The translations under genes and the position numbers were made by a program. From the NCBI GenBank assembly GCA_977020255.1, contig CDROCS010002890.1, forward strand, positions 1 to 64,000: DNA of 64,000 nucleotides, read 5' to 3'. Positions 1 to 23,056 of the stretch are shown one piece after another (within the stretch, counting starts at the first letter, position 1; every line of letters starts with the position of its first letter). This DNA is from Obrimoposthia wandeli. Its lineage: Eukaryota. The notes under the pieces were generated by a model that saw only the letters and a program-made list of their open reading frames with translations, did no database searches and was not told where the DNA came from.

Positions 1-3000
1 AAAAATTGTTCAGGCTCTATATTTAACAACAACGAGTGACCCACAAGACCACGAATACAGCAACACATAGCTATTGAGGCGGTGGCGCTCACTGCTTTAC
101 TTTCTGGTGACAATCACAAGTGTAGAGCTGGAATAGTAAAGGCGCAGCATTGCAGTACGTTTATACAAAACGAAGATCTATTGACTTGCAAGTATGGGAT
201 ATGGATGCAAGGTCTGGCTATGCTGCTTAATCAGAACGGGGGCACACAATACGCAAGCGGCGCGGAAGGGGAGTTAACTACCCTGCAGAGCGGTAACTTA
301 CCTGCAATGGTTAGTTTAACGGGTGTTAAACATCAAAGTTCAGCATCCTTGTTACCAATGGTTTAACTACTGTTTACGCCTACCTGCTAGATCTTCAAAG
401 TATATACTAACTTTAAAGATAATGATGTTTAGCGTTGCTGGTGCTCATTCGAGAACTGTTCAGATGGCGATGAATGATATCCAGTACTGCTAATAGCTCT
501 AAGCGCAAGTGCAGTGTTCTCAGTTGAAAGAACGGTGATAATATACAGGTTAAATATATATTTAGTGCTGGCGGGGTTGACATCAACTGCGTAATTGAAA
601 TTTCACGAAGCCTAGTATTCACACAGAAAGCTCGACACTAACCTTCCGAGCTTTCTTTTAGTTATTACCACCTCCCTTTAACCGCTCTACCATCAGCTGA
701 TTAAAGTTTATACAAACCCAAACCTAAAGTGTTTGGGTTTTTCGTCTAGGTAATGATGAATTAAATCGGGCGGTACTGGTGGTGCCCATCAATAAATATT
801 TGAAAGTCAATTGCGCATGCTCTCGGGTGCTGTCCGTTATCGTTGCTTCCTACTGGCTCAGAGCGATTATAAACATAACACCTCGCGCCGCTAGTGATTA
901 TTAGTGTGACTTTTTTAGCGTTATACTTTTCTTTGAAATGATCGCACACACGCCTTGCACACGACCTGAATAATCGGCTCATTTGCCAATATAGTCACCT
1001 GCAATCGGGATCTTTTACTTACAATCTAATTCATGCTGGCTAATGTTTGCTGTTATCTTTCGCATTATAATTCCTCTACTTTTGTTACATGCCAGCCATC
1101 GAAGTAAAAAAATTCAATAGTGTTATTTTTCGCCTCTCTCGCATTATGTGCATTTATCACCATAAAAAATCTGATTCTTCACCTTTTGCTACGAAAACGT
1201 TAAATAGTTCATTTTATTCTCCAGTTAAGTTTGATTAATGAATAAACATAATATAGTATAGCTACTGTATCAGAAATTAAACTATACAATGCAACCGAGG
1301 TTATTATGAATAAATTACAAGCGTTAAATTGGTTAGTTGAGAATGTGACAAGATGGCCAGCAAAAGGTAAAGGCGTTGTTTTACCCCTATCCAATTGGTT
1401 TTGGGGTGGCTTCACTGATGGTGAAGTTAAGCTAATTAAAGCTGAACCTACAGAAGCCATACGCTGATTGTCATATCACGCAGCAAAGTGGTTGGATGTT
1501 GATCTTAGAGAAAGCAGGAGTAAGGAATGCTAACTCAAAGCTACTAAAGGGAACACGTCAGCGCGCTACGATATATGTTGACTGGAATATTTACTTGAAA
1601 TATAGGGGCGCTGCTCACTTTAACACAAAGAGGAGTTGCGACTCATGGAACACTAGATTTTCCTAATAAGGTTGCAGGCTCTAAAAAGACAGTGACGGCA
1701 AGGCTGCAAATCGCATTTGCAACCATAAGCACTATAAATCTCACCGCTTGGCTTGGCTTTGTAGTACTGGTAAATTCCCAAAGAAATCATAGACCATAAA
1801 TGGTAATGGATTGGATAATAGGCCAAAACCTAGATCAACAACGTTAAAGGTTAACGCGCTAGAAACTCAAGAAAAGAATATTAATACGTCAGGAGTAACC
1901 GGAGTAAGTTGATTAACAAAAGCATAAGTGGATAGCAAAATAGGAAGCGTACAGGTGTGGCCCAGAAAGTTCCGATATAAATAAAACAATAGAAAGAAGA
2001 GGTTGTCCGAGCAGAAGCTGCAAGAAATTCTCGCAAGACCACGGATCTGAAAGACCTTATTATTTCAAGGAGAAATAATTATGCTAACGCTTTTCAAGGT
2101 AAACTAATAAGCATTGAAGTTTCCTGGTTGATTATAAAGAGTTATACGAGAGCAAAAAGAAAACACGCGCTGACTTATTGCAAGATGATTTAAATTCCGT
2201 CGATTTGTGCACTATGATGAATGCGAAAAATTACGCACTGAAGTGCAAAATTAAAAGCAGCAGTTACGAATGAAAGAGGTTAATTGATTATGGCGAATGA
2301 TTCATGGAGAACACCACCAGAAGTATTTGATACTTTAAACAAAGAGTTTGTATTTTTGCTGATACAGCTTGCACATATGAAAATAAACTTTGCCCTGTCG
2401 GATTTACCGAAGAAGCGATAGTCTATCAACGAATCCATGGTTAGCTAGGCTTAAAAATAGTTATCCTTATATTGGTGGTAATGCTTATGTTTTCTGTAAC
2501 CCACCATATTCAAATCCTATGCCATAGGTAAAGCATGTGCTGAAACTCCAGTCTGACAGTCTTGGTGTTATGGTTCTTAACATGAAGAGCACTAGCGTAA
2601 GGTTGGTTTGCTGAAGCGCTTAAAGGCGTTAGTGAAATAAGAAATATTAGCAGTGATAGAAAAAGAAACGGTACCTATTCAATCGGAAGATTAGCTTTTG
2701 TAAATGACGATGGTATGCCAATAAGCGGGAATAACAAACCTCAGTTCATACTTGTATTTAACCCGTTTAAAATCGGCGAGCAAGCAACAATTTATGTTCA
2801 AATAGTTTTATAAATAAAAGGTACTCACTATGATTTCAATCACGAAACCGCACCCATTAAGCAAATGAAAGACGATTGCCCATGAAATTGAAAGCATCAA
2901 GAAGACAGAAATTGCTGACTTTGGTGTTGAAATGGGTCATACGATTAGCATTCATTAAAAAGGACGGCGGCAAAGTTTACTTTTATTTCGTCAATGGTAT

Positions 3001-4600
3001 CGATAAAGCGATCGCTGACTTACTTTTAATTACTGAAAAGATGAGGCTTTGATTATGGATAATTTAACTCATGATGAATTAGCGAACAGCCTAGCTATCC
3101 ATTTAATTAATGATCAACGTATGGTTTGGGAGGACATCCCAGTAGGAAAGGTTCATTCTGTACGCCCTGACGTATTAACCATAGAAAAAAGCTATTCAAG
3201 CCCTAACCCTATATCTGAAATAAAGGTAAGTGTTTCGGATTTTAGATCGGATAACTAAAGAGCTAAATGGAAGGCTTATTTAGATTTTAGCTATGGCGTT
3301 ATATTTGCCGTGCCAAAAGGTTTAATTAAAAAGTCAGATGTACCTAATGGGTGCGGATTGATAACCTTTAACGGTCAATCATGGAATACAGTTAAAAAGA
3401 CCAACTTGCACCCGCAAAAATTAAATGACGAATTATTATTGAAACTATTTAGTAGCGAGCAAGAAAACGCAAAAACCAGTAATTAAAAATAGAGATTTTG
3501 ATCAACACGTTCACCATGAAACATTACGTCAAAAGTTTGGTAAAGAGTTTCGCAGTAAGATAGCTTTTCTTGATGATTATCGAAAAAGAATTAAAAGCAT
3601 TAAAAAGAGTTGGCTGCACTGTTTGATATAGATGTTGATGGATGGGCTTTTGAGAGAAATGTTGCCTACGCCATAAAGCAACTTAAAGTCATGGCTGACG
3701 AATCAGAACGTAAATTAAAGATAGCTAACGAGCTTGGGTCAATGAGAGATAGTATTAGCGCAGGCCTAGACAGGATAATCAATAAATATACTAACAATTA
3801 ATATTCATATAAACCCAAAAATTACACTTCACAAAATCCATGTTATAATTGCAGGCATCATTATCAATCGGTGCTTGCAATGCAATCAAAGAAACAACGA
3901 GCGCACAACAAGCTCAAACAAAAACAACAATTAACCGCTAACGCAAACACTCGCGGCGGTGGCAATAGATCCAGTAATTTCGGGTATAGGCTTACAGGCT
4001 CTTATCATAATGCAGATCAAAAAAGAGACGTATGGGAGGTGGCTGGGTACCCTTCTATTGTAAACTTCTCAGACCACTGGAACATGCAAGCCCGTTTTGG
4101 TATCGCTAAAGCAGGCATTCACCTATTACCTAATAAATGCTGGCAAACTCATCCAATTATTTCTGATGGCGAATACGATGCTGACCGCGATTTAACACCC
4201 TTTGAAAAAGACGTTGAAACACTCGTTAAAAAATTCGACCTATTTGCACGATTAAAAGGAATGGATTGGCGTAATCGCATTGGTCGTTATGCTGGCATTA
4301 TCCCGATCGTAAAAGAAACTGTTGCGGGCGGAAAACCAGATCCCACTAAACCATCCTCAACGATTGGCGGCATAGCTGCACTGATTAAAATTGTGCCTGT
4401 TCCTGAATCACAAATAGATGTGACTGATGTTAGCACCAATTCAGACATTCCGGGCTTGTTAGCGAAAATACGGCCAAAGATGCCTAGCTGTTACAACTTT
4501 AGAAATAACGTTGCAGGCGATCGAAACCCTATTGATAACAACGAAATTCGGGGTAATTAGACCCTAGCCAGTAACTATTTATATTTGCGGAAGGTGCTGA
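1..4600. repeat. Error-rich direct copy of 46792-~51400 (tailspike 3' end, endolysin, HNH, Dam, MmcB-like, portal 5' part)
   Basis: Base 1 AAAAATTGTTCAGGCTCTATATTTAACAACAACG matches 46792 onward; the same genes appear but are broken by small indels (e.g. tailspike, Dam and HNH are intact at 45-50 kb and fragmented here). Confidence 0.97.
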
Positions 4601-5348
4601 TGATGGGTCTATTTTTGGTATTCCTGCAAACGAGGCGGGTTATAATTCGTTAATGGATATGGAGAAAATTTGTGTCGCTGGCTCAGAAGGTTTATTTAAG
4701 AACTCTAAGCAAAGAACAGTGGTTAATGTTAAAGATAGTCAAGTGGCTAACGTATTAACTAATGACCCTAAGAAAAAAGAAATATTTGATCAATCAGCAG
4801 ATGATTTTGCCAGCGGCTTTGATTCGATGCTTACGACTTACGGTATGGACGTTAATTCGCTACAATCAACGCTATCAGACCCGACTGCACCCTTTACCAA
4901 CTCATTAAACTGTTACGCGGCATCGCTTCAAATTCCTGCGTCTGAATTGATTGGTGTACAAATGAATAAGCAGGCAAGTGTCGGCAATGAAACAGCATTA
5001 ATTAACACCGCAGAAAGTCGCCGAGAAAATACACTTTCACCGATGATCATTAGATTTCTAGAATACTTCGTTGGACGTGGAATAATTAAAGCGCCCACTA
5101 ATGAAATAGTAGTTACCTGGGCGAAATTATCTGAACCAACTACAGGTGAAAAATTAGATAACAGTAAAAAAATGGCTGATGTTAATAAATTGGCATTTGA
5201 TACTGGCATGGGCGAACCTACATTCACCGAAGAAGAAGTGCGCAAAGGCTTGGTATTCGAAGAAAAGCCCGAAGAAGAATTAGAGGGTTTCGGCGAAGAT
5301 GATGAAGATGACGAAGACCTAGTAAAAGATAATGAACAACCTAAGTAA
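3880..5348 (+). CDS. Phage portal protein (DUF1073-like), frameshifted near 4450-4570 in this copy
   Basis: ORFs 3871-4560 and 4653-5348 form one ~480-aa protein; the second copy (50898-51740) reads through the break (DISSENYGMPSYYNF...QLDPSRVFIFAEG); it precedes the head morphogenesis gene and has an acidic C-terminus. Confidence 0.85.
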
Positions 5349-5511
5349 GTGGCAACCGCAATCAGTATTAATCACTAGCCAAGAGGTTAGTGATGCGATT
5401 TCCTACGCGGATTATATGGGGTGGTATCTTGCGCCGTCACCATTAAATGCTGCTTTTATTACCATGCTAGCAATCAACAAGGTTCTTCATGAAAATCCTA
5501 TCGATAATTAA
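5332..5511 (+). CDS. Small hypothetical protein (59 aa, MNNLSKWQPQ...)
   Basis: Open frame fills the gap between the portal and head genes and overlaps both; below the ORF-track cutoff. Confidence 0.45.
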   Translation: MNNLSKWQPQSVLITSQEVSDAISYADYMGWYLAPSPLNAAFITMLAINKVLHENPIDN

Positions 5512-6550
5512 TGTTAAAGTTGGAAGCCCAGTAATTCCACGGAAAGCAGAAGATCCAGCTCATCAATTTCCGAACCTACGCAATGCTAACGCGCAATTAA
5601 CGAAACGCTATAAAAACATTAAGCGTGGTATTCGAACGTTGATCGCAAGCTTTGAACCTGTACTAATTACAAACAGCGATATTGGTAACTACAAAAATAG
5701 CAACGTAGGCGTTACCTGTATTGATTCTGACAAAGAAGTAACTACAAATGCAGCGGTGTATAAATACCAACTTGATTCACAGCGCTATCAAAGTATTAAC
5801 TTATTCCTGCAGCAATTGCTGTATGGTGAATTACTAGATAACCAGCAAGGAGCATTTACTAATCGTTGGTGGCTCAACGCTAATTTAACGAGTGCTTATA
5901 CTGATGGTACGGCAGATGCATTGCAATCATCTAAAAACATCGCTGTGCCTGCTGTGGTTGGCGTAGAAATATCGCAACAACTTCGAAGCACGCAGTTAGA
6001 ACAAATAGTATTTAGCCCAGGCTTTCAAAATCGTGTCGGGCTGGTCCATGCTCGCGTATTTGAAGGAATGAAAGGATTAAGTGATTCTAGCAAATCAGAC
6101 TTGTCTGCAACGTTAGCGCGATCAATGGCAAAAGGTGCAGGCATTCGTGAAGTTACCAAGGATGTGATGGCCCGTGTTGATGTGTCTCATAATAGAGCTA
6201 AACGAATTGCACGTACTGAGATATTAAATGCTTATCGTGGTGCCTCAGCGACCGAGACTGACGAGATAAATGAAAACGTATACGATGATAGTGAATGGCA
6301 TATGGTGTCGCTGTGGTGGTCAGCACTCAGCCCTACCACTAGGAAAACCCATTCCGCTAGGCACTCGAACACATACACCACCCAAGAAGTTAGGCAATTT
6401 TACAGCGTAAATGGAAACGCGATCTTTTGCTTATGCTCGCAGTCTCCCGTATTAGCAAATAAACGCACTGGTGAAATACTTCAGAAACCACTACAAGATA
6501 GGATGAAGAAACAACGAGAAGCTTGGGAGAAAGCTCACGGTGTAGTATAA
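5489..6550 (+). CDS. Head morphogenesis protein (Mu gpF / SPP1 gp7-like minor capsid)
   Basis: RAKRIARTEILNAY and W.SALSPTTRKTHSARH...N.I.CLCS motifs; position after the portal. Confidence 0.88.
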   Translation: MKILSIINVKVGSPVIPRKAEDPAHQFPNLRNANAQLTKRYKNIKRGIRTLIASFEPVLITNSDIGNYKNSNVGVTCIDSDKEVTTNAAVYKYQLDSQRYQSINLFLQQLLYGELLDNQQGAFTNRWWLNANLTSAYTDGTADALQSSKNIAVPAVVGVEISQQLRSTQLEQIVFSPGFQNRVGLVHARVFEGMKGLSDSSKSDLSATLARSMAKGAGIREVTKDVMARVDVSHNRAKRIARTEILNAYRGASATETDEINENVYDDSEWHMVSLWWSALSPTTRKTHSARHSNTYTTQEVRQFYSVNGNAIFCLCSQSPVLANKRTGEILQKPLQDRMKKQREAWEKAHGVV

Positions 6551-6551
6551 T
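6523..6551 (+). promoter_or_regulatory. Putative sigma70 promoter of RNA-HNH cassette 1
   Basis: TTGGGA (6523) -17 nt- TATAAT (6546), overlapping the 3' end of the head gene. Confidence 0.55.
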
Positions 6552-6556
6552 ATCAA

Positions 6557-6605
6557 TGCGCTGAGGGATTAATTACCCCGTTTCGACTCGTTACCGAACA
6601 GCGCA
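6557..6605 (+). ncRNA. Three-helix structured RNA element E1 upstream of HNH gene
   Basis: P1 TGCGCTG/CAGCGCA; P2 GGG-ATTAATTA-CCC; P3 TTCG-[ACTCGTTAC]-CGAA. The loop is complementary to GTAACGA (6617-6623) and partly to TAACGGAGT, which contains the SD (6629-6637). Confidence 0.75.
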
Positions 6606-6644
6606 AAACTTCCACAGTAACGACGCCTTAACGGAGTGAGTTCT

Positions 6645-7355
6645 ATGATCGTAAATACATGCAAGTCATGCTTATTAACAAAAGATATTTCTGAATTTTA
6701 CAAGTCAACAAGAACAACCTCTGGGTATAGAAATACCTGCAAGCAATGCGCTGCCGAAAACGCAGCAAAAAGATACAGCAAAACAAAGGTTTTCGTAGGT
6801 CACAATCAATCTAACTTGCCACTGCCAGATTTAAACTGGCTTCATGATAATTTTAATTACCACTCTGACGGCTATTTTGTAAGAAAGATCTCAAGAGGAA
6901 GATCTATTGCCGGAACAAAAACCCAAGGTAAGCTTGAAGATAATGGGTATTACAGAGTGAACATTAATTATAGCGCATTCCTTTTGCATATATTAATTTG
7001 GAAGTGGCATTATGGTACTGAGCCAAAATTCATTGATCACAAAGATAAAGACAGGCTGAATTGCAGGATTAACAACTTACGCGAAGCAAGTAAAAACGAA
7101 AATGCTAGAAATCAATTATTACCATCAAATAACACTAGCGGGTTTTACTGTGTAAGGTGGCATGAATATAATGGAAGAGTTGGCAAGTGGGTAGTGTCAA
7201 TTTCCCATGGTGGCAATATTACATCTTCATATTTTTCATGTATAACAACCGCGGTTAACTGGTATTGCATACAAGCGGAGTTGCTACACGGAAAATTCGC
7301 AAAAGATAAGATTGCACACAACAAAAAAGCTTTAGCTGAATATTTATCTAAGTAA
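6645..7355 (+). CDS. HNH homing endonuclease with N-terminal CxxC..CxxC finger
   Basis: CKSC...CKQC at the N-terminus; IDHKDKDRLNCRINNLREAS HNH_3 motif; C-terminal AP2-like region. ATG 6645 follows GGAG (the track starts at GTG 6636). Confidence 0.9.
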   Translation: MIVNTCKSCLLTKDISEFYKSTRTTSGYRNTCKQCAAENAAKRYSKTKVFVGHNQSNLPLPDLNWLHDNFNYHSDGYFVRKISRGRSIAGTKTQGKLEDNGYYRVNINYSAFLLHILIWKWHYGTEPKFIDHKDKDRLNCRINNLREASKNENARNQLLPSNNTSGFYCVRWHEYNGRVGKWVVSISHGGNITSSYFSCITTAVNWYCIQAELLHGKFAKDKIAHNKKALAEYLSK

Positions 7356-7358
7356 AAA

Positions 7359-7389
7359 TAAAGCAACCATTCACAGTGTGGTTGCTTTA
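7359..7389. terminator. Bidirectional intrinsic terminator
   Basis: 11-bp stem TAAAGCAACCA/TGGTTGCTTTA between convergent genes. Confidence 0.75.
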
Positions 7390-7400
7390 ATATATCACCC

Positions 7401-7724
7401 TTACTTGTTTGTTAGTTGTTTAAATAACTTAACTACGCGATCACCATAAACCCGTTGTCTTTCTTCGTCTTTTCTAGGTTGGAGCTTTTTAGTTAGTAAA
7501 TAACCATAATAAATAGAAAATGGCGCACCACCGTTACTACATGAACTCCACATTATTTTATCAACAGAAATCACATGGCAACCATCTTGCAATATATCGC
7601 CAATTTCGAACCTTCTATTTTTTACTGCGTAAGCGTGAAGTAGTTTATTTTTTTGTTTTTCAGCTTCGCTTTCTATGAGTTTAATTTTTGACTTTAACTT
7701 ATCAAGATCTTTATCAATACCCAT
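7401..7724 (-). CDS. Hypothetical phage protein
   Basis: 107-aa ORF with an AGGA-type SD in the leftward early operon. Confidence 0.7.
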   Translation of the reverse strand: MGIDKDLDKLKSKIKLIESEAEKQKNKLLHAYAVKNRRFEIGDILQDGCHVISVDKIMWSSCSNGGAPFSIYYGYLLTKKLQPRKDEERQRVYGDRVVKLFKQLTNK

Positions 7725-7744
7725 CTTATATATCCTTGGTTAAT

Positions 7745-7936
7745 TTAATCACTGATTATCACTACGTTTTCACATCTAACCCAATTCCACTCTCCAGGGT
7801 CATAAGCGTTTTTATCTGGCACAAGTCCAAATAGTGCCTCTTCAAAATCCACTGATATTACGTACTTATTTTCGCCTTGGTACATTACAAACATATTCGC
7901 ACCAAATCTGTGATTGTTAAATTCTTCTAAAGTCAT
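7745..7936 (-). CDS. Hypothetical phage protein
   Basis: 63-aa ORF with AAGGT SD. Confidence 0.65.
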   Translation of the reverse strand: MTLEEFNNHRFGANMFVMYQGENKYVISVDFEEALFGLVPDKNAYDPGEWNWVRCENVVIISD

Positions 7937-8147
7937 TATCTATACCTTACTTGTTGAGTTATTTAATTAATTCGTAAGCATCGTCAAGCGGTTCTTGTGG
8001 AAAGTTTTCCCAACTATCGCACTCTTGAGCCAAGTTAATTAACTTTTCAAGACCGCTCTTTAGCTCCTTTATTCTTAATTCTTAATTCGTGATGATTGAT
8101 AACTATCTGCATTTGTATTTTAGTCACTCCATTACCCTCTTATTTAG

Positions 8148-8432
8148 TTATTTAACCAGCTTATAAAACATTTCCAAGCCGACTTTTCTTTTTGATGCCA
8201 GATTATCATTAAGCAAAATTTTAACGACTCTTGATATTGTGGTGACATTTAAGCCAGTGCCACACACTAATAATTGACGGCTAACCTCGCCATTTTTCTT
8301 GAGGTAATTAGTCACCAAGTCAATTGTCTCTTGCGTTGGTGGCCCTTTACAAGTGCTTTGCGGCTTCTTAACTGGCTTTGCTTTGCCGAAATCGCCATTA
8401 GGATTGAGGCCTTTAAGTGAAGCTAAATTCAT
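8148..8432 (-). CDS. Putative winged-helix DNA-binding protein
   Basis: C-terminal ...NYLKKNGEVSRQLL..GTGLNVTTISRVVKIL... HTH-like pattern; start taken at ATG 8432. Confidence 0.55.
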   Translation of the reverse strand: MNLASLKGLNPNGDFGKAKPVKKPQSTCKGPPTQETIDLVTNYLKKNGEVSRQLLVCGTGLNVTTISRVVKILLNDNLASKRKVGLEMFYKLVK

Positions 8433-8526
8433 GACTATACCCCGAAATAAGTTAATACTGGATCGACTAATACAGCCACTAAGCACAGGGCAAGAATAAT
8501 TAACGCTCTTTGATTGTTGGTCATGG

Positions 8527-9717
8527 CTATTCTCCCTGGAACTTTATTGAATCAATAATCGCCTTTAATCGCTTAATGGCTATAGGTTCCATTTTGTTTC
8601 GATTACCTTTAATGAAATCTTCAAGGTTACTGCTGATCTTGCCTTTGATTTTTTCAACTTTTAGCTTGCCTTTGAATTCATCTTTTATGATATCAAACAA
8701 TACTTTTTTTACTCTTACAGGAACCATGCCCAACAAAACACACCTTTCCATAATTAGCTTGTTTTTGTTGAAATCGCCATTATCATCAACAGGGTAGGCA
8801 TTTTTGCCATTTTTATTTGTGAAAGACTCAAGAGCAATGGTTACGGTTTTTTCGTCATATCCTTTTGAATATGTGCCGCCACCACCGCCAACAACTTCTT
8901 TTACTGAATAGTAATCGCTAACATCTTCAGCACCATCGCTTGATAGTTGAATTAAAATTTCCATGTTCCCGGACTCAGCAAGCAACTTGGTCACTTCTCT
9001 TTGCAGGTAAAAGTCGCTAACTGTGCCTCTGTCGCGGTCAAGCTCTAAAACATTTGGCGCAAAATTATAACTGTAAGTGTACTTATCATTTAAGTCGCAA
9101 ACATATAAACCGCCAACAAATACCTTTTTAGTATCAGTTAACGCTTCTGCACTAAAGCAGTAACTACCATTATTTTGTGCGATTATTTCTATATCATCAT
9201 CCAGTGCATCCATACAAAGATAATTATTTTCTATGATGTCGAAATCTTCATAAGATAAACCAGTGATCATGAATGAAACTTCGTTGGCATCACCATCATC
9301 AATGTAAGTATCTTTAAATACATCAACGGTTAAGCAGTCAGCTCTTAGTTGTGGGTGCATTTCAATACTCACCCGCCAGCAATCAAAGCCATTTTTAACG
9401 AGTACTTTATAACCAAGGCGGCACAGTACTAGTAATGCCAGCTTATAACCTTCGCCATATTTGCCAATAGAGTCAGCATCATCACGCTTACTTGATTCGC
9501 CTAACATTAAGGTTGATAGGTCCATTGCGCCCGCTAAAGACTTTATTTTTAATACTCCGCTGCTTTCCATTTTACTTACGGTGAAGTTTTTTGTATCAAT
9601 AGCGTTTTGCAATATTTCGCGTGTTGCCTCCCAGAAACCCCAATGTTCAACATAGTTTGCGCCGATTGGTAAATATATCTTTTCTTGACTTGCTGCGCTT
9701 TTAATTTGTGTATTCAT
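8527..9717 (-). CDS. GHKL (HATPase_c-like) ATPase domain protein
   Basis: N-box REILQNAID and G2-box IGKYGEGYKLALL, typical of Hsp90/MutL/rIIA/MORC-type ATPases. Confidence 0.75.
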   Translation of the reverse strand: MNTQIKSAASQEKIYLPIGANYVEHWGFWEATREILQNAIDTKNFTVSKMESSGVLKIKSLAGAMDLSTLMLGESSKRDDADSIGKYGEGYKLALLVLCRLGYKVLVKNGFDCWRVSIEMHPQLRADCLTVDVFKDTYIDDGDANEVSFMITGLSYEDFDIIENNYLCMDALDDDIEIIAQNNGSYCFSAEALTDTKKVFVGGLYVCDLNDKYTYSYNFAPNVLELDRDRGTVSDFYLQREVTKLLAESGNMEILIQLSSDGAEDVSDYYSVKEVVGGGGGTYSKGYDEKTVTIALESFTNKNGKNAYPVDDNGDFNKNKLIMERCVLLGMVPVRVKKVLFDIIKDEFKGKLKVEKIKGKISSNLEDFIKGNRNKMEPIAIKRLKAIIDSIKFQGE

Positions 9718-9753
9718 AAAATCTCTCTAAATGTAATTAAGTAACTGGAACTA

Positions 9754-9782
9754 AATATAATCTATAATTAAACGTAATGCAA
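9754..9782 (-). promoter_or_regulatory. Leftward sigma70 promoter with TTACGTTTA box
   Basis: Minus strand TTGCAT-17-TATATT; TAAACGTAA at 9769-9777. Confidence 0.65.
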
Positions 9783-9805
9783 TACAATTTACATTAATAA
9801 ATAAA

Positions 9806-9829
9806 AAAGGCTGCAATTAAGCAACCTTT
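9806..9829 (-). terminator. Putative intrinsic terminator downstream of ssb
   Basis: AAAGGCTGC-AATTAA-GCAACCTTT imperfect stem with a T-run on the minus strand. Confidence 0.55.
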
Positions 9830-9998
9830 ATTATAATCGAAGCGGCTAGATGATTAGTCTATTATGAGGAATGAAAACCTTGCCTAACTCATTTACCGTG
9901 ATCAAGCGTCCATCGCACAAGAGGAGTAGTGCTGTGTATTATGTCGAGTAATACGCGGTACGATTGCGGCTGACGGCATGAGCTGCACCAGTTGTTAG

Positions 9999-10499
9999 TT
10001 AAAAGGGAATATCTAAATCTGGTGCGCTTTGTTGTCCTTGATTAGCAAAACCGCCTTGCTGCTGCCCTTGGTTGCTGGCGTTTATATTCTGCTGAATGGC
10101 TGACTGCTGTGCTGGGGCTTGCTGCTGCTGAAAGCCGCCTTGCTGTGCTGGGGCTTGCTGCCCTTGTGCAATATAACCACTACCTTCAAGTCGTGCGTTA
10201 TCCATGAATAGCTTAATATATGTCTGACCATCTTTTTCGCTTACTTGTGTTTCAATCTTTAGCTTCTCACAATTGACAACAACAAAATTACCGATAACCA
10301 ACGCAGTCGTATAATAATCAACATGGGCAGGACTTCCAGCAAATAATAGTGCTTTATAGTTGGTATACGTTTTCTCACCAGTTTGTCGATCCTTTGTCAT
10401 TTCTGACAACTCAAGAGCAAACATTGTTGAATTGCCATCTTTACCAACACCAGCTTTGATGAATGGTGCTTTTCTTAACTCGCCGTGTACTATATGCAT
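9999..10499 (-). CDS. ssb: Single-stranded DNA-binding protein
   Basis: OB-fold-length N-terminus, Q/G-rich linker, C-terminal DLDIPF tip; located next to the recombinase. Confidence 0.85.
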   Translation of the reverse strand: MHIVHGELRKAPFIKAGVGKDGNSTMFALELSEMTKDRQTGEKTYTNYKALLFAGSPAHVDYYTTALVIGNFVVVNCEKLKIETQVSEKDGQTYIKLFMDNARLEGSGYIAQGQQAPAQQGGFQQQQAPAQQSAIQQNINASNQGQQQGGFANQGQQSAPDLDIPF

Positions 10500-10545
10500 G
10501 ATTATTCCTTTTTGGTACCGTAATTGATTACGGTACCATTATTAG

Positions 10546-11535
10546 TTAAAAGTTATTTTTAATTTGATCATCAGTAACGATTGGTTTTTCAATTACTGGC
10601 TCTGGTGTTTGTTCAACGTGCTTTGCTGGGCTGAATGCTTTTTGCGGTACCACTTCTTCTATTGGATCTTCTTTGTTTAATTCATCAACTGCCTGCGCTG
10701 ATGACCATAAAGGAGATTTTAACGGTAACATTTTCTTTTGCATAGCTTCGGGCATTGATAGCCAAGCTGCTTTTAATGCTTCACAACCATCATTGGAGGC
10801 TAATTGCATTTGATTACGGTAACTGTCCATTTCGGGATCGCAATCGCCAGAATTAACCCAGTCAATAATGGCTTTACCAGTTTCAGCACCAAGATATGTG
10901 GTACCTTCACCAAAAACAGCCTTTAAGTCTTTAGGTATTTTAAGGTGCTGTTGATTCATGCCCTCATTGAACATCATCACACTTGCTGTCATTTCATACA
11001 TGAAGTTCTTTTCACATAAAGGCTGAACACCTAAGCTTACAGGTTTTGATGGCGAGGAAAAATCAGTTTTCTCTGCTGCACGAATACAACAAATTACATG
11101 CATATCGGATTGAAGTAAAACAGTCATCAATTTTTTGTGTTCGGCCTTGGCTTTTTTCCAGTCTGCCATTTTTTTACCGCGCAATAATGGTGCCTCTGCA
11201 ATTTCCATGCAGCCAGACTCCCATTCGTGGCTAATACTGTCAATGATCAACACTTTTACGCCTGCCGCCTGGAACTCTTTTATTGCTGTTGCATAGCGTT
11301 CTGGTGAGAACGGATAAAACAGATCACCAATCTGAAATGGACCGTCTAATTCATCAGCGTATAATGATCCGCGACGATTCTCAGTATCCAAGAAGCCAAT
11401 TTCGCTAGCATTATCAACCATGCCGCGCGCCATATACAAAGCGGTTAATGTTTTCCCGCTTCCAGATTGACCAGCAACCCCGATAACAATTTTTGAACCA
11501 GCTCGAGCTGCTGGGCGAATATTCAATATACTCAT
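10546..11535 (-). CDS. AAA ATPase, Sak4-like single-strand annealing recombinase
   Basis: Walker A GQSGSGKT, Walker B VLIIDSISHEW; exonuclease-ATPase-SSB synteny. Confidence 0.8.
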   Translation of the reverse strand: MSILNIRPAARAGSKIVIGVAGQSGSGKTLTALYMARGMVDNASEIGFLDTENRRGSLYADELDGPFQIGDLFYPFSPERYATAIKEFQAAGVKVLIIDSISHEWESGCMEIAEAPLLRGKKMADWKKAKAEHKKLMTVLLQSDMHVICCIRAAEKTDFSSPSKPVSLGVQPLCEKNFMYEMTASVMMFNEGMNQQHLKIPKDLKAVFGEGTTYLGAETGKAIIDWVNSGDCDPEMDSYRNQMQLASNDGCEALKAAWLSMPEAMQKKMLPLKSPLWSSAQAVDELNKEDPIEEVVPQKAFSPAKHVEQTPEPVIEKPIVTDDQIKNNF

Positions 11536-11611
11536 AAGTACCTCTAATTAAGTTTAGCTAGCATATTACGTTTAAGTTAATAATACTAGCTTTATGTTTG
11601 GTTTTATTTTT

Positions 11612-11824
11612 TTACAAGTCCCATACTGGTTGGTAGTCAGTATTACTAGCCAAATCAATTGGGGTTAAAATCAAACTGCTGCCGTCTTTAAAAATGTATT
11701 TAATATTTGAGCCGTTTAACTCACTGAGCGTATTAGCCTCCTTACCATCAGGCTTAACTCTTAAGCCCTCAATAATGTGGTGCTTTTTGTTTAACGCTAC
11801 AAACGCTCGCATATCTTCCGTCAT
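11612..11824 (-). CDS. Hypothetical protein
   Basis: 70-aa ORF translationally coupled within the operon. Confidence 0.6.
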   Translation of the reverse strand: MTEDMRAFVALNKKHHIIEGLRVKPDGKEANTLSELNGSNIKYIFKDGSSLILTPIDLASNTDYQPVWDL

Positions 11825-11826
11825 AA

Positions 11827-12786
11827 TTAAAACCCATATCGTTTAGCTAGCCATTCAGGCGTTGGCAACTCAACTGCCGAATCGTTATATGCCGGCCAGT
11901 TATCATTATCAACACAGTTTTTATGATATTTAAGCGCAAATTGATATTGTTCACGGCCAATTTGTAATTGCTGATCTGTCATCCAATATAATTGCGGTAT
12001 AAACGGGCTAGACTTGGCTTGTGCTAACAGTCCCATTTTAAATGATTGACTATATGCTGCGGTTAATACGTCACAAACGAACGATTGTTTCAACCAGTAC
12101 CCTGCCTCATGTGCTTGTCTCCCAAACGCATCACCTCGAATATCACGAGTCGTTTTATAATCTGGTACTTCACCATTTTTGGTTACAATATCAGGGCGAA
12201 TTTTTACCTTGTACCATTCGCCATCAATTTCAACTTCGCATACCACTGATAATTCAAACGTGGCACCGTGAAATAATTTAACATTAGCAGGATCGTTAAA
12301 CAATGTTTTGCGCATCAATAATATTTGGTCGTAATCCTCGCCTTTAACCATCGTTTTACCGATTGAATTATATTCCTGGAGTATCACTTCAAGTTGGAAT
12401 ATTTTAACGTTCTCGTCGCACTCAAGCGCTAACTGGACTAATTCATTAAATGGCTTGGTCGTGTAACCCGTTCGACCTGCTGCTTTTAAGTAAGCTTTTA
12501 TTGCCGCATCACTAGTCAAAAATTTGTCGTTATCTTCTTTAGTGATTTTTCGCACAAAAAGACTGTCGAATAATTCAGGTTCTAATACTGCGGCATGGCT
12601 TGCGATACCGAAATGCAACGCGGCACTTTCCTTATTTTCGCCATATTTCAAAACAGCAGGACAATCATTATGAATTACACAAAGCTGTGAGCCGCTAACG
12701 TGATCTTCGAACTTTTCGCCATGGTAATCGTCATTTGGTAGTTCGCCGTTAGGGAATATTTGAATGTTTCGGATTGATGTGATCAT
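11827..12786 (-). CDS. RecE/exonuclease VIII-like PD-(D/E)XK exonuclease (DUF3799-like)
   Basis: Y.G......SGSQL, AL.FG.A.H..VLEPE.F, KIRPD...DYKTT, YW.Q motifs; ATG 12786 overlaps the upstream stop. Confidence 0.85.
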   Translation of the reverse strand: MITSIRNIQIFPNGELPNDDYHGEKFEDHVSGSQLCVIHNDCPAVLKYGENKESAALHFGIASHAAVLEPELFDSLFVRKITKEDNDKFLTSDAAIKAYLKAAGRTGYTTKPFNELVQLALECDENVKIFQLEVILQEYNSIGKTMVKGEDYDQILLMRKTLFNDPANVKLFHGATFELSVVCEVEIDGEWYKVKIRPDIVTKNGEVPDYKTTRDIRGDAFGRQAHEAGYWLKQSFVCDVLTAAYSQSFKMGLLAQAKSSPFIPQLYWMTDQQLQIGREQYQFALKYHKNCVDNDNWPAYNDSAVELPTPEWLAKRYGF

Positions 12787-13298
12787 TATTTTTCCTCCAT
12801 GAATTTCATCATTTCCCACTCAGCGCACTTAATCATATCGGGATCAGTCGCTTCGTAGGGTTCGCTGTCAGTCACAGGTACTTTGATAAAGAAAACTCCC
12901 TTATCAAATTTTCCTACAATCTGAGGCTTACATATTGGCACACCTTGACGTGTCATTTTCCCCAGCACCATACGTCCAGATAAGTCGAAGATAGATAGTG
13001 CGCTGTTGTACATTTTTGGTGGTGCAACCTTGTCGATAAGGTCTTGTATTTTTCGGCCTTCTGTAGTTGAGCGCTTAGGCAGGTAGCCTACTTCGGCTTT
13101 TTTCCATACTTCTTTGGCGGGGCGCTTGTCAAACTTGAAGCCGGCAACGCTGCCACTCTGGTATACTTGACCTTCAGTTGATCCAATTATATCGGCCACT
13201 TCCATGACGTGTTTTTCGTGTGCCACTTTAGCATCGCGCAGCTCGTTCATTTTGGTAGCTAGCTTGCCGCCTGTTACTTTGTAAAATTTGTGGTCCAT
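12786..13298 (-). CDS. Hypothetical phage protein
   Basis: 170-aa ORF with AAGGT SD; first gene after the promoter at 13343-13371. Confidence 0.75.
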   Translation of the reverse strand: MDHKFYKVTGGKLATKMNELRDAKVAHEKHVMEVADIIGSTEGQVYQSGSVAGFKFDKRPAKEVWKKAEVGYLPKRSTTEGRKIQDLIDKVAPPKMYNSALSIFDLSGRMVLGKMTRQGVPICKPQIVGKFDKGVFFIKVPVTDSEPYEATDPDMIKCAEWEMMKFMEEK

Positions 13299-13342
13299 AA
13301 CCTTTACCTTTTATTAATTAACATTATTTAAAAACTAAACAC

Positions 13343-13371
13343 AAGATACATTAAGTAAACTTAATAGTCAA
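13343..13371 (-). promoter_or_regulatory. Leftward promoter with TTAAGTTTA box
   Basis: Minus strand TTGACT-17-TATCTT; TAAACTTAA at 13356-13364. Confidence 0.65.
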
Positions 13372-13810
13372 TAGTGTTATCGAAGTAATCTGAAATACTT
13401 TTTAGTGATGCTTTGAAACCGTAGGCAACAATGCACGTATAACCCAATGATTCAGCCTGCAATAAAAACGCCTTGCTTTCTTTGCTTATCGATGAATCCT
13501 GTTTGCGACTGCGCTTCAGCTCCACATAAAGCCCATGATTGCCATTTGCGGGAACCATGACCAGCCAGTCGGGTACGCCTTTTTTGCGTCCCATCATGTT
13601 TAACATTGCGCCATATTGAGCGCTACCACTGCCGCCGCTCTCATTAATTACGTGAAACATCATGTGCGATAAATCAGGGTATAAAATATTACAGTGCGAA
13701 TTAAGTTGTTTTTGCTCGGGTGCTTCTTTAGGTGACTTAACCTTGCTGGCGTTTAATTGCTCATCCCAATAACATAGGATTCCTGCGCGATTTCTTTTGG
13801 CGATTATCAT
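13361..13810 (-). CDS. VRR-NUC domain nuclease
   Basis: FHVINE...G.KKGVPD.L....G.HGLYVELK...S.EQ-like...L...GY...V.YG motifs. Confidence 0.88.
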   Translation of the reverse strand: MIIAKRNRAGILCYWDEQLNASKVKSPKEAPEQKQLNSHCNILYPDLSHMMFHVINESGGSGSAQYGAMLNMMGRKKGVPDWLVMVPANGNHGLYVELKRSRKQDSSISKESKAFLLQAESLGYTCIVAYGFKASLKSISDYFDNTIDY

Positions 13811-15675
13811 GTGATCACCTCGTCGGCTACCCTTTTATCACCTTTTAAGGTTTTACCATTATTGAATCGTAAGCCATGAACGATACTTCCTTTAGCTCCC
13901 ACTCTATGAGTTATATGGGTTGGAGTAGAAAACATAGCTTTCATTGTGACAACTTGAAATGGCTTCATTGATAGCATCTTCTGTTGGTATGGATACCCCG
14001 TAATATGTCGCCTAACAAAGCTAGATGTCCATGACCTAGCACCACCTTGATTGATTGACCAAAACATAAGCGTGGCGATCTCTTGTTTTCCTGTCTCGTC
14101 AAATACATCGAGAAAATACATAACTTTGATAGCATCTTGGCTTTTGCCTGCGACTTCAACAGTCATTTTTAGCACAGGCTTAAAGTCTTCTGCTGAATAA
14201 TGCTGGCGCTGTAGTGCTGCATTAGGATCAACTAACATATTCCCACACTTACATTCTTTGGCTGCAATATCGCATTTTTCGCCACAACCTTTTGATACCA
14301 ATAAACCGTTACGCAACAAATCTTCACACACTCTAAATTGAAACCAGTGATCACAAGCATCATTACAACAGCGTCTTGCATACTCGCCATTCAATTCATT
14401 ACAAACAGGGCAATCCTGAAAGTTTTTCTCGAATGCGGCCTTTTTCTTCATGGCCTCTTCAAGTACTGGATTTTCATATTGCTGATAAAGTGATGCTACC
14501 GTGCCAGAAAAATCTAATACTAATGAATCGTTTTTTACAATGCCTGCTTCTAACTGCTCTTTTTTTAGTAGTCTACGGCCGCGACCAAGGGTTTGCTCGA
14601 ACAAAACTATTGAACCTATTCGGCGTAGTATAACGATGGTGTCTAATATGGGCGCATTGAAGCCAACTAGGAATATACCTATGTTGATAAGGTATTTAAT
14701 TTTACCTGCTTTAAATGCTGCTACGGCATCTTTACGCTTACTAAATTCAGTGTTAGTAGTTACCCCATCTTTGCTGGTAACGATTGCCCATGTTGAATCT
14801 GATAGTGATTCAGCCACTTCCTTACAGTGCGATGAACCAACACAAACAAGTAAAACACCGTTTCTCTCGCTAGCAATTCTTACCACATCTTCCATGATGT
14901 GATCGGTATCGCTTCGGTTCATTTTATCGTGCATTTTTGATAACTGGTTATCACTGTAATCAGCCGTTGAAAACTCGTTAGTCTCAACTTTTAAATCATC
15001 ACCAAGATCGTAAACGTCACTATTTTCCGTATAACCAAAAGTGTCAGGGTGAGTAAATCCATTACCGACAAGAAATTGACGGTCTATTGCTGGCTCGATC
15101 TGCTTCTTCCAAAAGTCACCGGTTATTGATCGACCATCGCGCCAAGGTGTACCCGACCAACCGATAACAATTAACATAGGATTGATGGCACGAAAGTGAT
15201 TTATTACCTTCATAAAGTCGCTATCAGGATTATCAAACGGAGTATTGTGGCACTCATCAATCTGTAAAACGTGCAACTTATAATCTTTAAACTTATCATT
15301 AAGCGCGTTAGCAACTGAGCCAACTGTCGCAGCAATCACGGGAAAATGTGTTGATTTTCTGCCAACGTACGCGGAAAAATAAGAACATTTAACACCAGCT
15401 TCCCAACAAGTTTCACCGTCCTGCATAGCTAACTCACCAACGGCAGTTAATATCATTGAGTTAATGCCAACGCCCGTGCAATGTTCAGATATTGCCGCCA
15501 TCATTAAGCTTTTACCACTTGATACGCTGGCGTTTATGTAAGCGTGATCAATAGTTCTTTTTTCGCTAAATGATTTAAATTGCTCTCTAATGTGATCTAA
15601 CGTGTTACTAACTACATCGCCTTGAAAATCATACAGAGCGTATTCGCCGTATTTTTTGCCGTGGTATTTATTCAT
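13807..15675 (-). CDS. Superfamily 2 DNA helicase with C-terminal zinc ribbons (T1-like)
   Basis: LYDFQ Q-motif, SVSSGKS Walker A, IDECH Walker B, SGTP motif III, FEQTLGRGRR motif VI, CxxC clusters. Confidence 0.9.
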   Translation of the reverse strand: MNKYHGKKYGEYALYDFQGDVVSNTLDHIREQFKSFSEKRTIDHAYINASVSSGKSLMMAAISEHCTGVGINSMILTAVGELAMQDGETCWEAGVKCSYFSAYVGRKSTHFPVIAATVGSVANALNDKFKDYKLHVLQIDECHNTPFDNPDSDFMKVINHFRAINPMLIVIGWSGTPWRDGRSITGDFWKKQIEPAIDRQFLVGNGFTHPDTFGYTENSDVYDLGDDLKVETNEFSTADYSDNQLSKMHDKMNRSDTDHIMEDVVRIASERNGVLLVCVGSSHCKEVAESLSDSTWAIVTSKDGVTTNTEFSKRKDAVAAFKAGKIKYLINIGIFLVGFNAPILDTIVILRRIGSIVLFEQTLGRGRRLLKKEQLEAGIVKNDSLVLDFSGTVASLYQQYENPVLEEAMKKKAAFEKNFQDCPVCNELNGEYARRCCNDACDHWFQFRVCEDLLRNGLLVSKGCGEKCDIAAKECKCGNMLVDPNAALQRQHYSAEDFKPVLKMTVEVAGKSQDAIKVMYFLDVFDETGKQEIATLMFWSINQGGARSWTSSFVRRHITGYPYQQKMLSMKPFQVVTMKAMFSTPTHITHRVGAKGSIVHGLRFNNGKTLKGDKRVADEVIT

Positions 15676-16046
15676 GATAATTCACCCTTTAATATGTTTG
15701 GGTTTTCATAAATATTACCAACGACAACTAGCTCTTGATGCTTGATAACTCGGCTACTTAATGTGCCGCCACAAAGATAACAACCACTATCAGCGCAGTA
15801 TTCAACCGTGAACGGGTTCCATATAATTGGATCTAATTGATGTAAAACATCACCTTCATAGATATCCTTTCCGTTGATATCTTGCAGGCCGATGAATTGC
15901 ATTAGTACGTCGCCATAATCACCGCGAATTAATTTACAAAGCTCATTTCGCTGGTATTCATCTTTGCATAATTTATCGTTATAAAAGTTAACCATTGTTT
16001 TGTGTGCTTCATGCCATGCTCTAAATTTAATTTCTTTCACAATCAT
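15672..16046 (-). CDS. YopX family protein
   Basis: EIKFRAW...LMQFIGLQDINGKDIYEGD...VVGNIYENP. Confidence 0.9.
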   Translation of the reverse strand: MIVKEIKFRAWHEAHKTMVNFYNDKLCKDEYQRNELCKLIRGDYGDVLMQFIGLQDINGKDIYEGDVLHQLDPIIWNPFTVEYCADSGCYLCGGTLSSRVIKHQELVVVGNIYENPNILKGELS

Positions 16047-17749: not shown

Positions 17750-17751
17750 GG

Positions 17752-18060
17752 TTATACAATATCTATTTCGTACTTTTCAATAGGAATTATTGCACATTTG
17801 TCTTTGTTGTATTGAAATTGAAGGTTGTTTTTAGCATGATTAGGCCATGTTCCAGATATTTCAACAGAGTGAAAAGGAATGTAAACACCACATTCTGTAG
17901 TTAAATAGCAAATATTAACCCACCATTCTATTTTGTATTTTTTACCTGTTAGTTTAATGATGAATTCAAACTTTCTAATTTCATCAAAAGTAACACCAAC
18001 TAGCAACCCAGCATTAACCCCACTTTCCAATACTTTAATTAACTGCTCTTGTTCCATCAC
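17752..18060 (-). CDS. Hypothetical protein
   Basis: 102-aa ORF with AAGGA SD. Confidence 0.7.
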   Translation of the reverse strand: MMEQEQLIKVLESGVNAGLLVGVTFDEIRKFEFIIKLTGKKYKIEWWVNICYLTTECGVYIPFHSVEISGTWPNHAKNNLQFQYNKDKCAIIPIEKYEIDIV

Positions 18061-18130
18061 ATTTCCTTAATTATTATCAACACCCAAACTATAACACGTT
18101 AAGTTTAGTAATCAAGTGTTATGTTTGTTT

Positions 18131-18316
18131 TTAATTTAAATCCGATTCTTTTAAGTTGAAGTGTTTAGCTATAGCGATTGCATCTTCTTCATCTAAATAT
18201 ACAATCTTGTGATCTGCTAATAGATATATAGTCCTTAGCGTGGTGCGTGAAGGGCATGCAGTAACGTCTAAATCTCTGAAGTCGTATTCTTTTATATTCA
18301 TTGCTTTTATGCTCAT
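18131..18316 (-). CDS. Hypothetical protein
   Basis: 61-aa ORF with AAGGA SD. Confidence 0.6.
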   Translation of the reverse strand: MSIKAMNIKEYDFRDLDVTACPSRTTLRTIYLLADHKIVYLDEEDAIAIAKHFNLKESDLN

Positions 18317-18325
18317 TGCTTTTCC

Positions 18326-22279: not shown

Positions 22280-22342
22280 ATAAATATTGACTGTTGAGTT
22301 TGATTGATGTAGATTAGGTTTAAATTAATTAGGAGATATAAA

Positions 22343-22633
22343 ATGGTAAACGAAAAATTAAACAAATGGTTTGGACTGTCTTACGCTAGCTTTTTAACTT
22401 TGCCTCGGGTTCTTATGCAGGAAATGCCACAAGAGTAGCAAGAAGAAATGTCAAAATTGCTAAATGATTATGAGCAATCTTTCCCTAACCAGCCAGATAT
22501 GGAGTTAATAGTTACATTCAAGCAGAATAATAAATTCATCAAGGCACCTGAATATCTTGTTAATTATCGTAGACCTGACTTTGAAAAGATAAACGAATTA
22601 AAAGGGAAATATAATGGAAACAAAAGAGGGTAA
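22343..22633 (+). pseudogene. Small phage protein interrupted by an in-frame TAG (22436-22438)
   Basis: AGGAG SD, ATG 22343; MVNEKLNKWFGLSYASFLTLPRVLMQEMPQE*QEEMSKLLNDYEQ continues in frame. Confidence 0.55.
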
Positions 22634-22778
22634 GGCACTAAGAAAAATGATGGACGCAGCAAGGCTAATAGACGAAGCGCTTGAATTATTAGACAAGAAT
22701 AGCATCGCACAAAAGCCATTGACTGAAGCGTATGGTACTATATGTTTCGTTATAAATTTAGCTGCTGATAATGACTAA
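22614..22778 (+). CDS. Small hypothetical protein (54 aa)
   Basis: ATG with AAGGGA SD; overlaps the upstream gene end. Confidence 0.5.
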   Translation: METKEGKALRKMMDAARLIDEALELLDKNSIAQKPLTEAYGTICFVINLAADND

Positions 22779-22862
22779 ACAGCACTTGCATTGCGCTTAG
22801 TTGTGGGTTATATTTGTTTTGTTCTCACTAAAGTATGTATATCAGATAAGGAGTAAGTAGTT

Positions 22863-23042: not shown

Positions 23043-23056
23043 TTGCAAAAACCTTT

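Follow-up and report, generated by a model that had tools for sequence, protein, structure and literature searches.

The 64,000-nt stretch of DNA analysed here (positions 1 to 64,000 of contig CDROCS010002890.1, GenBank assembly GCA_977020255.1; henceforth the window) carries a tailed-phage genome with five HNH endonuclease genes, four of which are each preceded by a short three-helix element that we will refer to as a leader. Cassettes, copies and leaders are numbered 1 to 4 by the start of their HNH gene (6645, 23260, 35480 on the minus strand and 42193; Table 1). Each leader is 48-56 nt long and consists of a closing stem (P1), a short hairpin (P2) and a further hairpin (P3), with a P3 loop of 9, 9, 10 and 9 nt in leaders 1 to 4. 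An earlier note on this DNA had described these elements; the stems it quoted are present as written and its loop lengths of 9-10 nt agree with ours, while the linkers between leader and ATG, given there as 37-42 nt, measure 36-42 nt. It had missed that the leaders come with two kinds of P2, that the P3 loop has two downstream targets accompanied by a fourth hairpin (P4), and that a fifth HNH gene, at 48324-48875, has no leader element.

The leaders fall into two classes, which comprise the sequence of P2 together with its junctions: copies 1 and 3 have an 18-nt P2 block in common, with a single base different, and copies 2 and 4 have an identical 17-nt block. These are two interchangeable modules: each P2 type is found with each nuclease family, so that this single genome shows all four combinations. 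All four nucleases belong to PHROG HNH families and the first two also carry the Pfam domain HNH_3, i.e., they have nuclease domains of the homing type; in the protein of HNH gene 1, HNH_3 is accompanied by a zinc-finger-like N-terminal region.

The earlier note had also placed a promoter just upstream of three copies. Our promoter scan found a -35/-10 pair only at cassettes 1 and 3, called an extended -10 with no -35 at cassette 4, and accepted nothing upstream of cassette 2. Promoter 1 overlaps the last codons of a head-morphogenesis gene (5489-6550), whose stop codon lies within the -10 box. Across 83 distinct elements, a -10 box with at least five of six matches to TATAAT ended 3-7 nt before P1 in 68 cases, against an expectation of about 12 for upstream sequence after shuffling; this spacing points to a transcript that starts at the foot of P1 (transcription from a sigma-70-type -10 is predicted to begin at P1 or a few bases from it). 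At the other end of cassette 1, an inverted repeat is a possible terminator; the terminator scan made no call there.

Table 1. Features of the four cassettes and related sites in the window. R1 and R2 are covariance models of the copies 2/4 and copies 1/3 types, respectively; ORF, open reading frame.
Feature	Position	Strand	Details
Promoter-like site 1	6523-6551	+	-35 TTGGGA, 17 nt, -10 TATAAT
Leader RNA 1	6557-6605	+	P2 type of copy 3; R2 73.0 bits; P1 7 bp (6557-6563 with 6599-6605); P2 6565-6567 with 6576-6578; P3 4 bp (6582-6585 with 6595-6598), loop 6586-6594; minimum-free-energy fold is the proposed structure
Loop 1 targets	6617-6637	+	site 1 6617-6623, perfect 7-nt complement; site 2 6629-6637, 5+3 nt with one bulge, spans Shine-Dalgarno GGAG
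HNH gene 1	6645-7355	+	236 aa from ATG 6645; Pfam HNH_3, PHROG phrog_99
Inverted repeat, 9 bp	7361-7387		between convergent genes; direct reading
Leader RNA 2	23168-23223	+	P2 type of copy 4; R1 66.5 bits; core 23171-23220; P1 up to 9 bp; P3 6 bp, loop 23200-23208
Loop 2 targets	23229-23254	+	site 1 23229-23235; site 2 23242-23248, inside P4 loop; P4 23238-23254, Shine-Dalgarno in its loop and 3' arm
HNH gene 2	23260-23835	+	191 aa; Pfam HNH_3, phrog_99
Promoter-like site 3	35577-35606	-	TTTGCA, 18 nt, TATAAT
Leader RNA 3	35523-35570	-	P2 type of copy 1; R2 57.3 bits; P1 6 bp; P3 loop 35542-35533
Loop 3 targets	35487-35508	-	site 1 35508-35503; site 2 35496-35491, in loop of weak P4 35502-35487; Shine-Dalgarno AAGG
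HNH gene 3	34875-35480	-	201 aa; phrog_953; without Pfam match
Extended -10, cassette 4	42091-42099	+	TGATATAAT
Leader RNA 4	42103-42156	+	P2 type of copy 2; R1 52.2 bits; P1 8 bp; P3 loop 42134-42142
Loop 4 targets	42164-42189	+	site 1 42164-42170; site 2 42179-42183, in P4 loop; P4 42172-42189, 6 bp, Shine-Dalgarno in its loop and 3' arm
HNH gene 4	42193-42801	+	202 aa; phrog_953
Relic of ancestral 3' end of gene 41677-42090	42795-42838	+	alignment to cassette-free relatives
Fifth HNH_3 gene	48324-48875		relative of HNH gene 2; begins 4 nt past ORF 48102-48320
Degraded repeat of leader 1	53221-53265	+	second, noisy genome copy; 27.5 bits

Covariation of the leaders and their relatives

Sequences from outside the window were collected through exact matches to the two P2 blocks. 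The 17-nt block of copies 2/4 was found in 116 viral-contig stretches, 102 of which could be parsed to P1, P2 and P3; the block of copies 1/3, searched as a pattern with one degenerate letter that covers both window copies, gave 39 viral and 24 metagenome stretches, about twenty of them with the three-helix form. Within the fetched loci, one to two near-variants of the copies 2/4 P2 were seen, with one mismatch each.

Selection on RNA structure, as proposed in the earlier note, is borne out by compensatory changes in P1 and P3 in the outside relatives of both types. Specifically, in a gapless alignment of 24 distinct outside sequences of the copies 2/4 type, 93.3% of positions expected to pair did so (vs. 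68.7% when shuffled), compensatory changes affected 11 of the 15 pairs, including all six of P1 and all five of P3, and the covariation score was 0.674 vs. 0.184, a signal that was lost when partners were shifted by 1-3 columns. P2 is invariant in this alignment because the sequences were selected on it; it includes two G-U wobbles, and G-U pairs are also used in P3. For the copies 1/3 type (13 outside sequences), pairing reached 99.5%, with compensatory changes at 9 of 14 pairs.

We built covariance models R1 and R2 from these two types, with no window sequence in either. The models recovered exactly the four leaders that the earlier note had placed before HNH genes (see Table 1 for scores) together with a noisy duplicate of copy 1, and elsewhere in the 64 kb they scored at most 12.7 bits on either strand. 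The duplicate, at 53221-53265, is a second copy of cassette 1, since 46792-64000 repeats 1-18879. An isolated minus-strand hairpin at 4549-4566, where ORFs 3871-4560 and 4653-5348 adjoin, looks like the copies 1/3 P2 with 2 mismatches; we rejected it as a leader, as it has neither P1 nor P3 and scores 12.7 bits, and regard it as chance or a fragment.

Folding energies of single elements are ordinary (z-scores of -0.9 to -2.6), and the case for an RNA thus rests on covariation and not on stability. A loose descriptor combining P1, P2, P3 and one loop complement was also tried; it matched 12-15 times per strand vs. 10-14 times in shuffled sequence, and therefore cannot alone find further copies.

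In bacterial genomes, an exact P2-block scan returned 83 stretches, a count near chance for 596 Gb. Forty-one of these score at least 41 bits with the full structure, and the remainder score about 25 bits from the bare block; because the 17-mer count is close to chance, true bacterial elements can be told from bare matches only by model score. The true elements come from Alpha-, Beta- and Gammaproteobacteria and from Planctomycetota. One planctomycete contig, from a Fuerstiella metagenome-assembled genome (L199), holds two full elements 1.9 kb apart (3957-4006 and 5859-5908), with near-identical loops and sites and different ORFs downstream.

The same comparisons bear on a DNA-level explanation, in which the element would be a repressor operator, an attC-like recombination site or the sequence recognised by the nuclease itself. 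A 17-nt P2 block that is invariant across phyla shows a degree of conservation also typical of protein-binding DNA, and the homing endonuclease I-TevI binds an operator and represses its own promoter (PMC2988022). However, compensatory changes preserve the helices despite sequence change, the G-U pairs of P2 (copies 2/4) and P3 are mismatches on the other strand, the element always points the same way as the gene that follows it and begins where the transcript is predicted to start, and the complementarity to the Shine-Dalgarno region described below makes sense in RNA only. We consider a role as DNA very improbable.

Loop targets and proposed control of translation

The loop of P3 is matched to sequences in the linker that follows the leader. 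Among 63 distinct loops, 73% had a perfect complement of at least 6 nt within the 70 nt downstream at their own locus (vs. 6.5% in cross-locus comparisons), and 44 had two or more complementary sites (vs. 5.4% cross-locus). The two sites have characteristic positions: site 1 starts at a median of 9 nt past P1, in the single-stranded part of the linker (5-13 nt after P1), and site 2 ends at a median of 9 nt before the start codon, in the loop of P4, the 3' arm of which is the Shine-Dalgarno sequence. At many loci the complementarity at site 2 extends into the Shine-Dalgarno purines. The arms of P4 co-vary from locus to locus, and its stem around site 2 averages 5.3 bp, compared with 3.1 bp when the position is shifted by 9 nt as a control. 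The median duplex energies with the loop are nearly the same at the proximal and the distal site (-6.15 and -6.05 kcal/mol, respectively), compared with -1.1 and -3.0 kcal/mol in cross-locus pairings.

In the window, site 1 is present downstream of all four leaders, and each loop is specific to its own linker, with 6-7 nt of complementarity in cognate pairs (i.e., on the diagonal of the comparison) vs. 3-5 nt in the others; the pairing of the loop with downstream targets that the earlier note had described is therefore specific to cognate pairs. P4 is clear at copies 2 and 4, weak at copy 3 and marginal at copy 1. A further complementarity was seen at leader 3, where 8 bases of the P2 loop and 3' arm (35551-35558) are complementary to 35483-35490 (minus strand), the Shine-Dalgarno and start region of HNH gene 3; as HNH gene 4 has the same Shine-Dalgarno region and yet the other P2 type, this may be a coincidence.

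A two-helix relative of the leader was found in eight viral contigs (L004, L007-L010, L029, L037 and L039). It has the P2 of copies 1/3 and no P3; the 5' arm of its P1 has two complements, namely the 3' arm and a further copy overlapping the Shine-Dalgarno sequence. Its logic of a decoy plus a Shine-Dalgarno site is thus alike, though differently constructed.

Together, the fold, the matched loop and sites, and their constant placement with respect to both the start codon and the predicted 5' end of the transcript point to control of translation initiation in cis. On balance we think it probable, though well short of certain, that each homing-endonuclease cassette carries a portable module of promoter plus leader that acts in this way. 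Judging from the positions of the pairings, the Shine-Dalgarno sequence would be held within P4, and the P3 loop would pair either with site 1, as a decoy, or with site 2, beside the Shine-Dalgarno sequence. Because the two pairings of the loop are about equally stable, the message would be a two-state device, one that could keep the output of a potentially harmful DNA-cutting or DNA-recombining enzyme low wherever the cassette is located. The net effect on the message would, we infer, be repression.

Several points weigh against this proposal. Either loop pairing lets P4 form, and the switch could run in either direction. P4 is weak at leader 1, with only 3 bp, shuffled sequences fold at least as stably as the linkers of leaders 1 and 3, and cassette 2 lacks an accepted promoter. 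Two points concern sampling: P1 and P3 were demanded by the parsing, and the covariation alignments were drawn from sequences that passed it; moreover, sampling by exact P2 matches covers two sub-lineages, such that the share of about 70% endonucleases given below may not hold family-wide. Finally, P2 is nearly invariant across phyla beside freely varying P1 and P3, which a purely cis-acting model does not explain and which suggests a further partner. We can imagine, with low confidence, that P2 docks a conserved cellular machine or factor (e.g., the ribosome, an RNase or a chaperone), with the re-codable loop and target serving as a private address, which would make the leader a modular, programmable device of mobile elements in several phyla; many orthogonal copies could then coexist in a single genome, and would confer copy-specific immunity in trans between competing elements if the RNA were released.

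The positions of the sites also admit the opposite sign of regulation, in which pairing of the loop with site 2 would open P4 and free the Shine-Dalgarno sequence, with site 1 as a negative element. Such a design has a precedent, in that a long-range pseudoknot activates rep translation in IncI-alpha and IncB plasmids. Site 2 occupies most of the P4 loop, so that a loop-loop helix of 6-9 bp could strain a stem of 4-6 bp, and pairings of equal energy are what a switch able to go either way would have. By contrast, the complementarity that reaches into the Shine-Dalgarno purines at many loci would mask this sequence rather than free it, and a leader peptide or other trigger is not visible. We regard activation as distinctly unlikely, at about an eighth of our belief.

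Downstream genes, cassette mobility and genome context

The genes behind the leader are predominantly, but not exclusively, endonucleases. Of 88 ORFs downstream of the element in viral contigs, 59 group into a single HNH/GIY-YIG cluster, and a few others are endonuclease-like singletons; HNH or GIY-YIG endonucleases make up about 70% of the downstream genes in these contigs. Among loci with the copies 1/3 type of P2, 10 of 12 downstream genes are endonuclease-like. A Pfam search of 78 non-redundant downstream proteins found HNH_3 (22), HNH (7), HNH_5 (3), GIY-YIG (7), AP2 (9) and NUMOD3 (4), as well as DUF1376 (4), Phage_pRha (3), Bro-N (2), ANT (1) and Dam (1); in PHROG, HNH and homing-endonuclease families predominate. 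The antirepressor-like genes found behind the leader are of the Rha, Bro and KilAC kinds. Among the bacterial downstream ORFs listed, four match viral downstream proteins, three of them in the endonuclease cluster, and five of ten tested are tyrosine integrases, all in Planctomycetota. Cultured phages also carry the element, where it is unannotated: in Vibrio phage K443 (OZ196328, near 6176) it directly follows the head-morphogenesis gene, like cassette 1, and in Alteromonas phage PB15 (KX982260, near 6879) it precedes an AP2-type gene. Thalassomonas phage BA3 (EU124666, near 22860) is a further carrier.

The leader is thus strongly enriched before phage homing endonucleases, and is neither restricted to them nor required by them. 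The dedicated partnership suggested in the earlier note does not fit with leaders before Rha, Bro, KilAC, DUF1376, Dam and tyrosine-integrase genes, nor with an HNH gene that has none. The leader rather appears as a common front end of selfish DNA-acting genes from Proteobacteria to Planctomycetota, which in lytic phages are homing endonucleases and in integrated elements are integrases.

The closest relative of the phage, a 47.9-kb viral contig, is without all four HNH cassettes. At slot 1, its convergent genes directly follow the head-morphogenesis gene; at slot 2, the gap between terminase and portal genes contains neither an HNH gene nor the element; at slot 3, small unrelated ORFs stand where the cassette would be; and at slot 4, two tail genes abut, as they do in two further relatives. 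Presence and absence at the same site in related genomes is characteristic of freestanding homing-endonuclease units, and since the closest relative lacks all four, the cassettes were acquired independently, in line with the mobile units envisaged in the earlier note. An imperfect direct repeat of about 45 bp flanks cassette 4; its left copy is the recoded, functional 3' end of the upstream gene (about 42040-42090) and its right copy a relic of the ancestral 3' end of that gene. The relic includes, immediately ahead of the next gene, a TGnTATAAT-like box, and may supply the promoter of this next gene.

Similarity to other loci is often confined to the stretch from the -10 box through the start codon or shortly past it (e.g., 6552-6639 with locus L023, and 42091-42190 with L105), which argues that the leader recombines as a module of its own. 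Cassette 1 had no megablast match in the phage collection.

The earlier note had raised another role for the RNA, as a scaffold or guide bound by the nuclease, with the loop choosing the DNA target in the manner of omega-RNA and IscB (HEARO). Physical linkage to HNH genes and a variable loop are all that speaks for it. The same leader stands before GIY-YIG, integrase, antirepressor-like and DUF1376 genes; in the window, P2 type does not track nuclease family; the complements of the loop are found in the linker of its own message and keep a fixed spacing to the start codon; and at the empty insertion sites of relatives, cognate loops show no better a match than non-cognate ones. In addition, small homing enzymes of the HNH_3/AP2 type recognise DNA through protein domains, and searching the whole window against Rfam at the gathering score returned nothing, including no HEARO match. 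We give this possibility almost no credence.

The phage genome itself is about 46.8 kb long and present approximately 1.37 times in the window. In a self-alignment of the window, 46792-64000 is a repeat of 1-18879 at 83% identity with 2316 gap columns, and of each repeated stretch one copy is intact and the other riddled with frame-breaking differences. These differences account for the ORF-poor ends of the window, where 1-3800 and about 51800-64000 are almost free of ORFs, the corresponding stretches of the other copy being intact. The duplicated ends look like an unpolished concatemeric assembly and not biology. The tailed-phage genes encoded comprise head morphogenesis, large terminase, portal-like, major tail and tail proteins, and among cultured phages, those of Aeromonas and Vibrio come nearest, with protein identities of 33-55%. 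ARAGORN found no tRNA genes in the window, which leaves a tRNA-like gene reading without support.

Between the large terminase gene and cassette 2, about 0.9 kb (22280-23170) is without ORFs. The closest relative has a comparable ORF-poor gap of about 1.1 kb (L167, 3400-4500), with two short conserved patches. We found no Rfam match and only weak repeats in 22280-23170, which could be a packaging or replication signal.

Comparison with known RNAs and leaders

The nearest catalogued RNA is int-alpA (Rfam RF02996), which goes back to a comparative survey by Weinberg et al. (2017; PMC5737381). The main text of that survey is without the motif, two other papers mention it only briefly, and we found no function for int-alpA in the literature searched. 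Loci with the copies 2/4 P2 block score 25.8-40.7 bits against the int-alpA model, and four of them pass the gathering score of 35.8 (36.5-40.7 bits); leader 2 falls below it, at 29.6 bits, and leaders 1, 3 and 4 have no Rfam match even at E<=10. In the model, a 2-nt junction separates the closing stem from a P2 of 4 bp, and an A-rich junction leads on to a P3 of 5 bp with a 9-nt loop; the window leaders are likewise three-way junctions of P1, P2 and P3, with about 9 nt in the P3 loop. The 3' tail of the model is complementary to the P3 loop, as site 1 is in the window, and the bacterial elements that precede integrase genes are consistent with the family name. Its two junctions recur in leaders 2/4, whereas leaders 1/3 differ both in the junctions and in P2, a module not represented in the Rfam model. 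Another difference is that Rfam classes int-alpA as a small RNA (sRNA) gene, whereas here the element forms a 5' leader, accompanied by a second target and a Shine-Dalgarno hairpin.

Our best reading, based on these scores and shared features, is that the leaders belong to a broad int-alpA family that would be a general leader of mobile-element genes. This kind of RNA is already catalogued; what appears to be new relative to the literature searched is the second P2 module, the architecture of two sites plus a hairpin, and the link to homing endonucleases. The description of int-alpA as a 5' leader with a matched loop, a decoy and a Shine-Dalgarno site amounts to a concrete mechanism proposal. 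At least two interchangeable P2 modules exist, one of which is missed by current Rfam searches, and in annotation the leader could be used to mark the precise 5' boundary of such cassettes.

Another system with which the leaders can be compared is C4 of phages P1 and P7, to which the earlier note had likened them. C4 is a small structured RNA on the transcript of its target and controls a gene that is harmful if overproduced; its loops can pair with sites of two sets, one of which lies at a ribosome-binding site, and loop and target co-vary to give different specificities. As an analogy of logic the comparison is fair: here too a loop matches a ribosome-binding-site region, with specificity between loop and target. 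Membership of the C4 family is another matter, as neither the window nor 14 related loci matched C4, c4-2 or c4-a1b1 at E<=10, and it is int-alpA, which the earlier note did not name, that comes closest. The leaders also differ from C4 in having one recognition loop and not two, in having both targets downstream, and in showing no evidence of processing.

These differences bear on the possibility that the leader is itself a trans-acting, C4-like antisense RNA. The RNA of about 50 nt would be released and bind site 2 of messages from the same cassette, resulting in a copy-specific shut-off after an early pulse or in exclusion during co-infection. Several features would suit such an RNA: the sRNA classification of int-alpA and the U-rich stretch after P1 in its model, the mutual specificity of loops and targets among the four cassettes (as immunity specificities need), the Rha, Bro-N and KilAC antirepressor-like genes downstream (as in the C4 system), and a closed P1 that would protect a released RNA. 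However, there is no C4-family match, none of the four window leaders has a terminator or a U-run after P1, no processing site was seen, and site 1, in the same molecule and only 5-13 nt away, should capture the loop first. We therefore favour control in cis, and hold release in trans to be unlikely.

Two further classes of RNA were considered and rejected. A riboswitch is at odds with two different P2 modules and the lack of a large conserved pocket, and a self-cleaving ribozyme with the absence of Rfam matches to such families.

Structured RNAs at the start of phage accessory transcripts are known from acr-aca operons, in which 5' untranslated region motifs (Aca1, Aca2) control translation (PMC13551039). 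The leader likewise starts at the (predicted) transcript start. However, the Aca motifs are bound by a regulator from the same operon, whereas none is co-encoded here, and the P2 type of the leader is independent of the downstream protein.

A further parallel concerns homing endonucleases themselves. The T4-type endonuclease genes I-TevI, I-TevII, I-TevIII, segB and mobE have hairpins that sequester the ribosome-binding site and are expressed at low levels in the phage operon; these hairpins are simple, and a late promoter inside the hairpin bypasses them (PMC2988022). P4 similarly buries the Shine-Dalgarno sequence of a homing-endonuclease gene, but here the promoter lies upstream of the whole leader, and a conserved three-way junction is added, with a loop complementary to the loop of P4. 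If control in cis is correct, it would explain how freestanding endonuclease genes that have landed between essential structural genes are expressed at safe levels, and the leaders would be natural examples of orthogonal RNA control parts. By this analogy, the cis-acting leader would extend the theme of the hidden ribosome-binding site known from T4-type endonuclease genes.

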